A stretch of DNA of 63,936 nt, the filler included, from Octopus bimaculoides (lineage: Eukaryota): the NCBI RefSeq assembly GCF_001194135.2. It is 5 parts of 4 records of this genome, joined end to end, with 100 filler letters (N's around TTAATTAATTAA, not from the genome) between each part and the next. Parts side by side here need not be neighbours in the genome. Positions count along the whole stretch, not along the records: positions 1 to 11,797 come from NC_068986.1; 4 more parts are not named here. One strand, given 5' to 3'. Position numbers and translations under genes: made by a program. Under the pieces are notes generated by a model. It did no database searches. It was not told where the DNA came from and worked only from the letters and a program-made list of their open reading frames with translations. This document shows, piece after piece, positions 1,874 through 9,294 of this stretch; within the stretch, counting starts at the first letter, position 1; every line of letters starts with the position of its first letter.

Positions 1874-2821
1874 TTAGCTTGTTGCAGGCTGCAATGAATA
1901 TACTGTACTTCTGCTTCCTGAAGCATCGTTACAATATACTTTTTTCAAATTTTCGCGAAATGATTTGCTTACTGCAGCATACAAAATAAAGTTGAAAGCA
2001 TTTTTCATACAAGCTATCATATCCAGACACATGTATAAGGGGGTATTTTTTACCTTTAGGATTGTCATTACGAAGTAATAAATAGATGTTGGAAACGTTG
2101 TAAGAAGAAACAATGAGTTTATAGCGATGACGACATAAATAGTATGTTTTGATTGGTCTGAAGAATTTCTCTGAAAACGCTGACCGAGGTGTGGTCGATG
2201 GAGAATTTTATATGCCAACAAAATAGAGCTAATTAGTAAAATCGTAGCCGGTATGAATGAATAAACGGTGTATCCTGCGCAAAATGTATATAGCTTATTC
2301 GTTAGAGATATTGTCAGCATCGCGTACGTAGCACTTACACATACAAGAAGCAAAACCTGCACAATGTAAGGTCTGTAACGATTAGAAGAATGAAGTCTGG
2401 AAAATGGGCAAAAAATTGCCAACAAGCGTTCAATAGATATGACAACCGTTATCCAGGAGGAATATATATACACAATAAATGTGAAAATCGCATATATATC
2501 GAGCATTAAAGAAGGTGTAATTGGTATTCCAGATAACAGGTTTGCTGATCTCCATATGATTCTTGGGTAACTCAACCATAATATAATGAAATCTACAAGA
2601 GCTAAACATTGGAGATATGGGACAATTTTAGTTTGACGCATTTTCTTCTTAAAAAATATTGCAAAAACTGCTAAATTTCCGATAGTTCCAAATGTCAGTA
2701 AAATAACTGAAATGTACCGTATGATTAAAATGAAAAGTACTTTTAATTCGTTTGCTGTCAGTCTCCTGTTTATCATTACGTCTATTTCTGTTTTGTTCAT
2801 ATTTTCTCCCATTTCATTCAT
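1874..2821 (-). CDS. Intronless class-A (rhodopsin-like) orphan GPCR, 315 aa (GPCR-1); FMRFamide-receptor/GPR139-like lophotrochozoan expansion type
   Basis: Seven hydrophobic segments. TM1 GTIGN, TM2 LALVD, TM3 ISIERLLAIFCPF (E/DRY-like), TM5 FIPATILL, TM6 FLLTTFP, TM7 NAFNFILY followed by helix-8 SKSFR. N-terminal sequon NKT. Uninterrupted ATG..TAA. Confidence 0.9.
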   Translation of the reverse strand: MNEMGENMNKTEIDVMINRRLTANELKVLFILIIRYISVILLTFGTIGNLAVFAIFFKKKMRQTKIVPYLQCLALVDFIILWLSYPRIIWRSANLLSGIPITPSLMLDIYAIFTFIVYIYSSWITVVISIERLLAIFCPFSRLHSSNRYRPYIVQVLLLVCVSATYAMLTISLTNKLYTFCAGYTVYSFIPATILLISSILLAYKILHRPHLGQRFQRNSSDQSKHTIYVVIAINSLFLLTTFPTSIYYFVMTILKVKNTPLYMCLDMIACMKNAFNFILYAAVSKSFRENLKKVYCNDASGSRSTVYSLQPATS

Positions 2822-3677
2822 AGGTCTTGATGGTAAGAATAACTAAGTGAATCAAATTCCACTTTCAAGTTATTTTTAAAAATATAAAATTCTGTCTTCG
2901 ATTGTAAGATCTGTATGTTACCTCTACCGATGTGAAGCGTTTTCAACTAAATATATTTACATATAATGTAGATAAATAGATATGTATGTATGTATGTATG
3001 TATGTATGTATGTATGCATGTATGTATGTATGTATGTGTACATACTCTGTTATGACGAGGATAGGTAAGTTTCGATTTCTACAGCTGCTGTATATAATGA
3101 TTTATTTAAGGTGACTATACCCATCGTGATGTTGCTCGTAGTAGTCCTGTTAATGATGATACCAATGGGAATAAAACAGTGATGAGGAAGATAATGGAGA
3201 TGATGGTGATGGAGGTGGTGGTAGGAATCCAAATTGAAGCTGAGAATAAGATTCTGATTAAATGGTACTGGTCATTATACTCATCCTTTGATGTTGATGA
3301 TGTAACATTTTTAACAATATCTATGATGATATGACATGAAAGACATAATAGAATCAATATCACTTTTGATTGCGAAAAAGGCTAGAATACTTCCTGCCAA
3401 AGGCTTGACCGCTATTAAGTAACTGCAGCATTTCCGATGTGATCTTACATTAACTTAATGCATTTAATACATGCATTTAGCAAATCTGTTGAATGTATAT
3501 TATTGAATATATTAATGCATTAAAATTATCTGATAGGATCCAAATCAACGACTGTAATTTCCAGTCTTGAAAGTCATATGATCAGGATATTGGCGGGTTT
3601 GTATATGAAATACATGAAATTGCATTCCAGACTGAACTTTCGGATATTTTAGGGTTTAATATGCTGCATTTAATAAG

Positions 3678-4295
3678 GTGACGAGCTGACAGAAGCTTTA
3701 GCACGCTGGGCGAAATGCTTAGCAGAATTTCGTCTGTCTTTACGTTCTGGGTTCAAATTCCGCCGAGGTCGACTTTGCCTTTCATCCTGTCGGGGTCCAT
3801 AAATTAAGTACCACTTACGCACTGGGGTCGATGAAATCGACTTAATCCCTTTGTCTGTCCTTGTTTTTCCCCTTTATGTTTAGCCCCTTGTGAGCAATAA
3901 TGAAATGCTTAGCGGTATTTCGTCTGCCGCTGCGTTTTGAGTTCAAATTCCGCCGAGGTCACTTTTGCCTTTCATCCTTTCGGGGCGAATTAAGTAAGTA
4001 CTAGTTAGCAGTTGGATCGATATAATCAACTTAACGAGTTTGTCTGTTCTTATTTTCCCCTCTGTGTGTAGCCCCTTGTGGGCCATAAAAAATAAGAAAC
4101 GTTAGCATGCTAGGCGAAATACTTAGTGGAATTTCGTCTGTCTTTACGTTCTGAGTTCAAATTCCGCCAAGGTCAACTTTACCTGTCTTCATTTCAGGGT
4201 CGATAAATTAAGTACTAGTTGCGTGTTTGTGTCAATCTAATCGACTGACCTCCTCCTCCAAAATTTCTGGCGTTGCGCCTAAAGTAGAAAAGGAA
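3678..4295 (+). mobile_element. Three tandem copies of tRNA-derived SINE family A
   Basis: Repeated head GAGCTGGCAGAA..GTTAGCA..GAAATGCTTAGC, B-box GAGTTCAAATTC, core CTTTGCCTTTCATCCTTTCGGGGTCGATAAATTAAGTAC. More than 15 copies elsewhere in the window. Confidence 0.88.
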
Positions 4296-4619
4296 TTTTA
4301 AGATTGTGAATTGGAAGAAACGTTATCTTGCCGAAGGATGATAACTTGCGTAGTAGAGTCAATTAAATGGCAAAGCGAACACCATGAATTCTTGGTTCAT
4401 CTGCCAGTTTTCTACTTCAAGAAAATGTGTAGCCATTAATTCACCAGTGTCTGCAAACCTGATTTCACTTATAACAATATTATCAATATTACCTTTGCAA
4501 TTAGTGCTGTTTTTCATTCTAGACTCTGTTTGCTGCCTTGTATAGTTTTTCCACACCAACAACCAAAGATTAGCAGGTGTCTAATTTTTAAAAATATTTT
4601 TCTCGATTACAATAAGCTA

Positions 4620-7469: not shown

Positions 7470-8002
7470 TTGTATATTTAGGAGATGAGGAATTATGTAC
7501 ATTATTTACATTATTTACATTCGACGGATATTTGTCCTCGGCTTCTTTTTGTTAAGGGTCATATGGCGTAGTGGTTAAAAGAGCGGTCTACTAACACCAA
7601 GATTCTGATTTCGATTCCAGACAATGACCTGAATAGTAGTAGTAGTAGTAGTAGTAGTAGTAGTAGTAGTAGTAGTAGTAGTAGTAGTGGTGGTAGTAGT
7701 AGTAGTAGTAGTAGTAGTAGTAGTAGTAGTAGTAGTAGTAGTAGTAGTGATGATGATAATAATAATAATGATGATAATAATAATAATAATAATATTAATA
7801 ATAATAATAATAATAATAATAATAATAATAATAATAATAATAATAATAATAACAACAACAACAACATCGAAAAATAGCTTAGGAATGAGAACCCACGTTC
7901 CAAATTTTCTCAAGAGACCTGATGACGGCTGAGGGGCATATCAGACGAAACGTTGTGTTAACAACAAACAAGACGTCACATGTAAATAAAGTAAATAATT
8001 TT
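7470..8002 (+). mobile_element. tRNA-headed SINE with compound microsatellite and hammerhead-like tail, preceded by an inverted copy of its own tail
   Basis: A-box TGGCGTAGTGG 7564-7574 and degenerate B-box ~7610-7618; (AGT)n/(AAT)n/(AAC)n 7634-7866; CTGATGA..GAAACGTT 7919-7954; inverted tail 7472-7555. Absent from paralogous block A. Degenerate target duplication at 7456-7469 / 8003-8018. Confidence 0.8.
7914..7959 (+). ncRNA. Degenerate minimal type I hammerhead ribozyme motif (Penelope-type, palindromic ACGU helix III)
   Basis: GAGAC-CTGATGA-C-GGCTG(loop)CAGAC-GAAA-CG-T-T-GTGTT. One mismatch each in stems I and II. Confidence 0.55.
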
Positions 8003-8394
8003 CAACTAACTTCGTCAGCTTAAAAGAAAACTGTTGAACTCATACGATGATTTAAAAAAACTACAAGTGAAAACTACAAGTGAGTGATTGACTTATTAGA
8101 AATTTAATTAATACGAAGGCAAATTTATAGACGTCAATAAAGTGACAGGAGTTATACAATGTACTTGTTCCAATATACTTACATTTAAACATGTAGCACT
8201 ATACGAAAAGTGAAAATGATGCAAGGAATTTTCAAGTAATAGACGAAACTTACATTGGGACACCCGTTGTCTTATATATAAAAAATATCGGATCTATGAA
8301 AAGGTTAAGAGTTACAATTGTATTAGATTGATTGTGACAAGAAAATAAGGATACAAATTATGCGTGGTTATATTATTTATCAGTAAAAAGTATT

Positions 8395-9294
8395 TTAGTT
8401 TCCTGCATTTGGCAGGGAATAGACACTTCGTCTATGAACACCAGTTTGCTTCAAACATATTTGTTTCAAATTGTCTCGAAATGATTTACTTACCACAAAA
8501 TATAAAATAAATTTGATACCGTTATTAAGACACGCTATTAAATCGAACAACAAAGATATTGCATCATTACTCTTCGATAGAAAAATATTTAGGAATGTGT
8601 TGATAGAAAGAGGGAAGGTTGTTATCAAAAACACACTGTTAATTGTTATTACGAGGTAAATCGAATTTCTTGATTGTGACGTAGAACTTCGTTGGACATT
8701 CTGACCGAGGTTTGCAGGGTGGAGTATTTTATAAATCATGAGAATAGACATGACGAATAATAATATAGCTGGTAGAAACGAATAAAAGAAATGTGCAGCG
8801 CACTTTCGGTAATTATTATTCTTTATAAATATCAGAATCATTGCGAACGAAATGGCAATGCAAACAAAAAGAAAAAAGAGTACGATGAATGGTTTATAAC
8901 GTCCAGCAGAACCAAGCTTGGAAAAAGGACAAAAAATTGCTCCCGAGCGTTCAAATGATATAACTACCGTAATCCAGGACGAAAACATGTTGAAAGCTAT
9001 TGCAATGATTCTATAAATTCGGCTTGATGAAATACTGTTGCCTAGTTCCGTTACTTCTAGTGAGTTAGACGTCCAAATAATTATTGGGCAATTCAAACAA
9101 ATCCCAATCATATCTACAACGACTAAACATAGGATATATGGAACAATTTTATTCCAACGCATATTCTTTCTGCAAAATGTTGCAATGGCTGTTATATTCC
9201 CGATAGTTCCAAATGTTAATATCATTATAGATACATATCTTACAGATATAATAAAATAGATATTTGTATCATTAACTTTTTGGGTACTGTTCAT
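8395..9294 (-). CDS. Intronless class-A orphan GPCR, 299 aa from the first ATG (GPCR-3)
   Basis: The ORF-track start at 9360 is GTG; the first ATG is 9292-9294 (MNST..NDT, two sequons). Motifs GTIGN, LVVVD, ISFERSGAIFCPF, FLPAILL, FLITTFP, NGIKFILY, SKSFR. No stop or frameshift. Confidence 0.82.
   Translation of the reverse strand: MNSTQKVNDTNIYFIISVRYVSIMILTFGTIGNITAIATFCRKNMRWNKIVPYILCLVVVDMIGICLNCPIIIWTSNSLEVTELGNSISSSRIYRIIAIAFNMFSSWITVVISFERSGAIFCPFSKLGSAGRYKPFIVLFFLFVCIAISFAMILIFIKNNNYRKCAAHFFYSFLPAILLFVMSILMIYKILHPANLGQNVQRSSTSQSRNSIYLVITINSVFLITTFPLSINTFLNIFLSKSNDAISLLFDLIACLNNGIKFILYFVVSKSFRDNLKQICLKQTGVHRRSVYSLPNAGN

Follow-up and report, generated by a model that had tools for sequence, protein, structure and literature searches.

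Here, we analyzed a stretch of DNA of 63,936 nucleotides (nt) from Octopus bimaculoides (assembly GCF_001194135.2), called the window below, whose positions 1-11797 come from NC_068986.1. This part is AT-rich (GC 26-42%) and dense in microsatellites, and three related minus-strand reading frames for G-protein-coupled receptors (GPCRs), named G1, G2 and G3, are found inside 7.4 kb. Judged from the sequence, and with a probability of about 0.85, the three genes are paralogs that form a small tandem array and belong to an octopod-expanded, Srw/peptide-receptor-like derived clade of class-A GPCRs. A preliminary description of the locus had claimed three same-strand, single-exon seven-transmembrane genes within 7.5 kb, with G1 being a more distant paralog and one of the three being dead, and all of this was confirmed. 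Its term "intronless" holds for the coding sequence (CDS), as each gene is one uninterrupted coding exon, but it reaches no further than that, and the public model for G1 contains introns, almost certainly in error. The following features were located, together with the kind of evidence used for each:

1874-2821, minus strand: G1, an intact class-A GPCR gene, a single open reading frame (ORF) from ATG to TAA for 315 amino acids (aa) (ORF, Pfam, AlphaFold2 and ortholog).
5377-6280, minus strand: G2, a pseudogene running from ATG to TAG, the duplicate of G3 (DNA alignment to G3, three-frame translation).
8395-9294, minus strand: G3, an intact class-A GPCR gene, a single ORF from ATG to TAA for 299 aa from the first ATG (ORF, Pfam).
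4846-7179, minus strand: duplication unit A, holding G2 together with ~0.9 kb upstream and ~0.5 kb downstream of it (blastn).
7322-10304, minus strand: duplication unit B, holding G3, head-to-tail with unit A and beginning ~140 bp past its end.
7477-8013, no strand: an insert of ~540 bp present in unit B only, chiefly (TAG)38 and (ATA)32 (gap between two blastn segments, Tandem Repeats Finder).
915-3237, minus strand: the public 2015 gene model P0024 (UPI00069516DE), partial, 168 aa (exact peptide matches, tblastn).

For G2 and G3 the first ATG was preferred, and the GTG starts given in a bacterial-code ORF list were dropped. A 321-aa version of G3 was likewise rejected, since only the bacterial code permits its GTG start; the true ATG is at 9294. 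In positions 1-11797, a tblastn search with 172 relatives found no fourth GPCR copy or relic, and no RNA genes were reported there by Rfam (gathering threshold) or ARAGORN.

G1 and G3 match the Pfam families 7tm_1 and 7TM_GPCR_Srw with E-values of 1e-7 to 4e-11. For 7tm_1 (PF00001, gathering threshold 30.5 bits) G1 scores above the cut-off (35.3 bits) and G3 just below it (29.4 bits). For Srw (PF10324, gathering threshold 22.2 bits) G1 reaches 35.2 and G3 43.2 bits, with only profile positions ~184-317 of 319, corresponding to the transmembrane helices (TM) 5 to 7, being matched. Among the 21 family members described below, 19 match 7tm_1 and 17 match Srw at E<=0.001; the Srw scores of G1, G3 and these members bear out the earlier suggestion of an srw- or peptide-receptor-like group. 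Srw is the nematode chemoreceptor family closest to the FMRFamide/peptide receptors. When a profile of 30 relatives was compared with the PDB, matches covering TM1-TM7 were obtained to GPR139 and to the galanin R2, neurotensin R1, ghrelin, CCK-A and somatostatin receptors (E 1e-25 to 1e-21). The AlphaFold2 model of G1 has seven long helices followed by helix 8 (pLDDT, the predicted local distance difference test, 84.9; pTM, the predicted template modelling score, 0.81), and Foldseek aligned it with class-A structures at a TM-score of 0.72-0.76 and a probability of 1.00, with 14-18% identity.

The predicted proteins have ~300 codons, an N-terminus of ~25 aa with N-glycosylation sequons, very short loops, helix 8 and a cysteine behind it. 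Recurring motifs are GN in TM1, LxxVD in TM2, SSWITVxIS-ER-L in TM3, YSFIPA in TM5, FLLTTFP in TM6, NNxxNFILY in TM7 and SKSFR in helix 8, which is followed by the cysteine. The class-A signature positions N1.50, D2.50, E/R3.49-3.50, P5.50, P6.50 and Y7.53, on which G-protein coupling depends, are present throughout the family, the exceptions being R3.50H in G2 and N7.49K in G3. Three common class-A features are lacking in the core clade, namely the disulfide between Cys3.25 and extracellular loop (ECL) 2, W4.50 and P7.50; position 7.50 is occupied by F (rarely I or C), giving NFxxY. ECL2 is shorter by ~9-15 residues and comprises ~7 residues in the G1 model (alignment: G1 residues 98-114, 170-188), while intracellular loop (ICL) 3 has ~14 residues with a conserved RPxLGQ. 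Both canonical cysteines and the ECL2 segment are retained in all outer relatives P0026-P0040 but P0029. Class-A receptors commonly have the disulfide, W4.50 and the proline of NPxxY but can do without them, so the superfamily assignment stands; by its derived features, the core clade is a divergent yet recognisable class-A subfamily.

Between G1 and G3, identity is highest in helix 8 (67%), TM3 (62%), TM6 (55%), TM5 (54%) and TM1 (52%) and lowest in ECL1 (0%), the N-terminus (18%) and ECL2 (29%). TM1, TM3 and TM7 had been named as conserved against a diverged N-terminus and diverged extracellular loops; this description fits except for TM7, which is only 40% identical and conserved only in its cytoplasmic NFILY half.

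G2 and G3 are located in two units that align with each other far beyond the genes. In the blastn comparison of units A and B, 4846-5000 corresponds to 7322-7476 at 81% and 4990-7179 to 8014-10304 at 79%; the repeat families D6-D8, D11-D17, D19 and D20 are spaced by ~3.02-3.12 kb in these units. The duplicated segment thus identified is ~2.3 kb long and lies head-to-tail. G2 and G3 share 84% nucleotide identity over the CDS and ~79-81% over the whole unit, with a ratio of non-synonymous to synonymous substitution rates (dN/dS, omega; Nei-Gojobori) of 0.69 at a dS of 0.22. That they are duplicates, as had been stated, is clear from the 84% identity of their CDS, but calling them recent was an overstatement at a dS of ~0.22. 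The pair originated by head-to-tail copying of the ~2.3-kb segment, and repeats on either side probably allowed this by unequal crossing-over or replication slippage; afterwards, G2 decayed, and G3 stayed open but evolved nearly neutrally. In the 0.9 kb of upstream sequence common to both genes, conservation does not exceed that of the coding sequence, and there is therefore no sign of a constrained regulatory block.

The disabled gene is G2, with a frameshift, a stop codon and deletions relative to G3. An additional base in an A-run near 5874 causes a +1 frameshift, and at 5680-5682 CAG is changed to TAG within the LGQ motif of ICL3, which does not vary in the family. The TM2/ECL1 junction is lost through a deletion of 27 bp near 6056 that keeps the frame, and a further deletion of 3 bp lies near 5411. 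In addition, R3.50 is replaced by H, turning ER into EH. The start codon has also shifted between the copies, so that the N-termini of G2 and G3 differ: the ATG of G2 (6278-6280) corresponds to TTG in G3, which starts at a new ATG (9292-9294) 11 codons further down (MNSTQK...). G3 carries the sequons NST and NDT. With tandem duplicates, a disabled G2 and lineage gains on top of older paralogs, the locus has the composition of a birth-and-death cluster.

G1 differs in age from this pair. It shares 47% aa identity with G3 and ~65% nucleotide identity with G2 and G3, at a dS of 1.17, which is saturated. No flanking homology of G1 to G2 or G3 was found; only the coding sequence aligns, and G1 must therefore be a much older paralog. 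This agrees with the more distant position that had been assigned to it. Its ortholog P0004 in a second octopod has 76% aa identity, and over 308 codons a dN/dS of 0.32 at a dS of 0.43 was calculated (Nei-Gojobori). From these substitution rates, G1 is an old paralog retained under purifying selection. Its features include an N-terminal NKT sequon, ERL with R3.50 being R132, NFILY in TM7 and helix 8 with SKSFR followed by Cys.

To determine the size of the family, an exhaustive profile search of 1.84 billion representatives, clustered at 50% identity, was performed. It yielded 21 clusters with E<1e-30, 594 with E<1e-10 and 4222 with E<1e-3; the bit scores of the family range from 478 to 130, with a step to <=120 for generic class A. 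In a word-indexed search with the family profile, in which the best 8000 candidates were scored, one further member was added (P0173); the census rests on the search of the representatives. Members from O. bimaculoides are P0003, P0005 (A0A0L8ICK4), P0019, P0020, P0022 (A0A0L8II40), P0023, P0024 (i.e. G1) and P0025, most of the models in this species being fragments of 134-274 aa. P0001/7, P0002, P0004, P0011, P0014, P0017, P0018 and P0021 were found on whole-genome shotgun contigs of SRR11869384-94. These contigs end in microsatellites and are thus genomic and not transcript evidence. Their source is taken as a second octopod on the basis of 76% aa identity and a dS of 0.43 to G1 only. P0012, P0013, P0015, P0016 and P0173 are Logan proteins with untraced runs and were counted with the second octopod. 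All traced members with E<1e-30 come from O. bimaculoides or the SRR11869384-94 source; O. bimaculoides has at least 9 loci and the second octopod at least 13. A more distant tier, P0026-P0031 with 130-145 bits, includes A0A0L8GGA3 of O. bimaculoides and sequences from unrelated ENA/ERR data sets. One of these, P0026 (317 aa, disulfide kept), lies at 10001-10954 of the 166-kb contig ERZ21867824 ctg117151l from ENA (L007) and has no GPCR neighbour within 10 kb on either side.

Instead of one-to-one orthologs of a conserved neuropeptide receptor without expansion, a multigene clade of 21 clusters at E<1e-30 was thus obtained. This orphan clade is small and evolves fast. It carries no specific name; in the sources, nothing past "GPCR family 1 profile domain-containing protein" was found. 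The reading as a lineage-specific, uncharacterised cephalopod family, as postulated beforehand, is therefore supported by the members traced to two octopod sources. In the neighbour-joining tree, the pairs G1/P0004, (G2,G3)/P0007, P0025/P0017 and (P0020,P0023)/P0016 are orthologous between the species, and G2/G3, P0020/P0023 and P0003/P0019 are species-level duplicates. As cross-species pairs occur in most subclades, the family had largely expanded before the two octopods diverged, and some members were gained or lost later. The rapid turnover that had been assumed is overstated: turnover is moderate, with ortholog pairs in most subclades and an omega of ~0.3.

Several observations weigh against this picture of an array with two intact receptor genes in an octopod-expanded clade. 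The first group concerns G3, which has a 7tm_1 score just under the cut-off and two odd replacements at codons 117 and 261, ERL>ERS and N7.49>K (KFILY). N7.49 is conserved in at least 90% of the family, and the Leu behind E/R3.50 is common to most close relatives aligned. Together, N7.49K and ERS suggest an altered or failing function. When the changes since the duplication were assigned to branches with P0001 as outgroup, 37 non-synonymous and 12 synonymous changes were obtained for G2 and 34 and 14 for G3, a rough estimate from simple parsimony with one outgroup at a dS of 0.63. With a site ratio of ~3.5 this results in a branch omega of ~0.9 for G2 and ~0.7 for G3. Since the counts of G3 are near those of the pseudogene, G3 appears to have evolved almost as freely, i.e. 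nearly neutrally. By these changes, G3 may be neofunctionalising or on the path to decay, and with its low 7tm_1 score, the two replacements and the branch omega of ~0.7 it could be a pseudogene that is not yet disrupted.

Taken further, G3 or even the whole trio might be non-functional, with open frames surviving by chance. The branch changes of G3 (34:14) are statistically like those of the dead G2 (37:12), its two replacements can be counted as hitting sites at least 90% conserved in the family, the start codon used by G2 is lost, and G3 is without a gene model in the searched collection. For the trio as a whole, this is opposed by the intact ortholog of G1 with its 76% identity and omega of 0.32 over 308 codons. 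For G3 itself, a frame of 299 codons has stayed open in AT-rich DNA after ~50 substitutions, for which the neutral chance is ~0.1 (rough estimate), and its overall dN/dS against P0001 is 0.30 at a dS of 0.63 (Nei-Gojobori). Altogether, we regard such a loss of function as rather unlikely.

The second observation against the picture is P0024, the only public model over G1. It is spliced, and its "intron" drops codons 28-214 (TM1-TM5). Its exons match the window exactly at 3121-3237, 2741-2842, ~1940-2182 and 915-959, every junction being GT/AG. This exact match, together with a UniParc id that falls among the ids of named O. bimaculoides proteins, agrees with O. bimaculoides as the source of the window. 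Low-complexity exons upstream (3121-3237) and downstream (915-959) are joined to the receptor sequence, and TM1-TM5 are spliced out at GT/AG sites inside the G1 ORF. In the searched protein collection, an exact full-length protein was found neither for G1 nor for G3, and G3 was without any model. Taken at face value, G1 would be expressed as the spliced form, and its long ORF would not be translated as such; all four junctions are canonical and the exons are identical to the window. Such a product, however, would have lost TM1-TM5 and would have a low-complexity upstream sequence fused in frame, and it has no start Met and no evident stop. Moreover, the second octopod has the full G1 ORF in one uninterrupted piece (L002/L003), with purifying selection acting across the "intron", and all traced relatives are single ORFs on their own contigs. 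This makes the spliced product highly improbable. P0024 is probably a prediction artefact, because every traced relative has a single ORF and because the ortholog shows purifying selection on the skipped part. In the reference annotation of O. bimaculoides, G1 is thus modelled wrongly, G3 is missing, and of several paralogs there are only fragments. As a consequence, published counts of octopus class-A GPCRs and the respective expression tables are probably incomplete for this clade.

Finally, the protein library is patchy for cephalopods, so that the range given as octopod-expanded is a minimum, and squids may also have members.

With the locus read as a tandem array of octopod-expanded class-A paralogs, the question of function can be addressed by comparison. 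G1 and the family generally would be working receptors signalling via heterotrimeric G proteins, and the short, disulfide-free ECL2 would leave the ligand pocket open. Such an open pocket, combined with the profile affinity to peptide receptors, would make a peptide of endogenous or exogenous origin or another small ligand the most likely agonist. The architecture with a short ECL2 and without the disulfide, W4.50 and P7.50 recalls melanocortin and lipid receptors more than the peptide receptors matched in the PDB, which is a resemblance and not a test.

One possibility is that the proteins are receptors for endogenous neuropeptides or modulators, e.g. of RFamide type, which were duplicated and subfunctionalised across octopus tissues, in the way that has been suggested for other class-A expansions of cephalopods. 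The top PDB profile matches are peptide receptors, the Srw match is above the cut-off for G1 and G3 and reaches E<=0.001 in 17 of 21 members, and orthologs are retained with an omega of ~0.3. Moreover, Ritschard et al. placed cephalopod-specific class-A expansions within the molluscan neuropeptide-receptor clade (PMC6408891). Against this, no match with E<1e-30 was traced beyond the octopod sources, which gives no sign of orthology to a deorphanised receptor; the losses of the disulfide, W4.50 and P7.50 are atypical of conserved peptide receptors, and the three traceable members are not in the table of Ritschard et al. We consider such a role possible, at somewhat less than even odds.

The tandem layout, the single coding exon and the pseudogene among three copies can also be regarded as hallmarks of external chemoreceptors (olfactory, gustatory or in the sucker), in which birth and death would track environmental ligands. 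This would agree with the highest divergence in the N-terminus and extracellular loops, with the Pfam Srw match and with an ortholog omega of ~0.3, which is high for a conserved peptide receptor; a like architecture is seen in the AcCRb candidates of Aplysia (PMC2700072) and in lophotrochozoan lineage-specific class-A expansions (PMC11886862). However, the family is small (~10-15 members per genome observed) and has ortholog pairs across two octopods, unlike fast-turnover repertoires. In the latter study, class-A lineage-specific expansions are smallest in cephalopods among molluscs, and nicotinic-like chemotactile receptors are credited with contact chemoreception in this group (PMC11886862). 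For known cephalopod-specific class-A expansions, testis, gill and mixed tissues are the sites of expression and not chemosensory organs (PMC6408891). An external chemosensory role, as had been suggested beforehand, draws on analogy and appears rather unlikely. Even more doubtful is the proposal that the clade is an octopod-specific set of external chemoreceptors or, alternatively, senses a peptide signal specific to cephalopods; if true, it would act in suckers, olfactory organ or skin beside the nicotinic-like chemotactile receptors. If the receptors are expressed and ligand-gated, they would add a GPCR arm to chemical and peptidergic signalling of the octopus, a field now dominated by nicotinic-like chemotactile receptors. 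In this case, the compact single-exon scaffold of ~300 aa without the canonical disulfide would also be of some interest for studies on GPCR structure and function.

The surroundings of the three genes are rich in repeats. In the spacer between G1 and G2, a sequence resembling a short interspersed nuclear element (SINE) is present three times in tandem at 3691-4300 on the plus strand, with copies of ~190-214 bp each that are 64-82% alike. The copies have a tRNA-T-arm-like core, GAGTTCAAATTCCGCCGAGGTC, and no call by ARAGORN or Rfam was obtained there. Within the unit-B insert, the arrays at 7634-7748 and 7756-7852 detected by Tandem Repeats Finder account for poly-Leu/Ile/Thr/Val ORFs on both strands at 7559-7932, all of them spurious. 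Long (GA)n / (TC)n arrays at 9896-9999 and 11743-11797 form a trivial inverted repeat of 55-69 nt, 1.75 kb apart. The CA/AC-rich region 10487-11240 is the source of several spurious Cys/His/Thr-rich ORFs on both strands.

Several known systems can be compared with the octopus trio. The vertebrate peptide receptors GPR139, GALR2, NTSR1, GHSR, CCK-A and SSTR2 are the best profile matches and have the same fold; identity is 14-18%, however, and the octopus clade is without the Cys3.25-ECL2 disulfide, W4.50 and P7.50 and has an ECL2 of ~7 residues. With Pfam PF10324 (Srw), the clade shares scores above gathering and NFxxY instead of NPxxY in TM7, but only the TM5-TM7 part is matched, 7tm_1 scores about equal, and the likeness comes from profile scores and not from phylogeny.

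Among molluscs, the candidate chemoreceptors AcCRa-c of Aplysia are similar by description only: they are rhodopsin-like and largely intronless, have a short variable N-terminus and a conserved R in TM3, and include pseudogenes (PMC2700072). AcCRb comprises 38 intronless genes for 319-364 aa with a short N-terminus and rhinophore expression (Cummins et al. 2009, PMC2700072). The AcCRs are known to be expressed in rhinophores and oral tentacles (PMC2700072), whereas the octopus trio is described here from its sequence.

Nath et al. 2025 described lineage-specific class-A expansions in 19 cephalopod genomes, with 3-146 genes per genome; cephalopods are comparatively poor in such expansions, perhaps since nicotinic-type chemotactile receptors take that role (PMC11886862). 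Their expansions share with our locus the tandem clusters, the mix of full-length, truncated and pseudogene copies and the lack of one-to-one orthologs outside the lineage; chemoreception is inferred statistically there, and the trio subfamily is not named in the text consulted (PMC11886862). In comparison, the ortholog pairs between two octopods make the trio clade lineage-specific at the octopod and not at the species level.

The closest parallel was described by Ritschard et al. 2019, who found two cephalopod-specific class-A groups of 63 and 21 sequences, co-localised in tandem and with many small single-exon genes (PMC6408891). These groups were placed among neuropeptide receptors and are mostly expressed outside the brain (PMC6408891). 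They are likewise class-A genes of the O. bimaculoides genome with tandem copies that include many single-exon genes of 825-924 bp (e.g. on Scaffold18646), are near peptide receptors and have a raised omega on some branches. They differ in their Pfam matches, as the group-1 models inspected reach 1e-16 to 1e-24 for 7tm_1, far stronger than the trio family (1e-7 to 1e-8). A0A0L8ICK4, A0A0L8II40 and A0A0L8GGA3, the only three members mapped to accessions, are not in their gene tables (S2), and no link of the family to the two groups was found via UniProt accessions and gene-model lengths. An equation of P0003 (274 aa) with the 825-bp models of Scaffold18646 was rejected, since only the length agrees and P0003 does not match the InterPro coordinates of 11399m. 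The octopus trio clade was therefore probably missed by that census; a plausible reason is that the models of 2015 (134-274 aa) are cut short or wrongly spliced. In its architecture, the locus is an ordinary case of a known pattern, a small tandem duplication of textbook type in which one copy has decayed.

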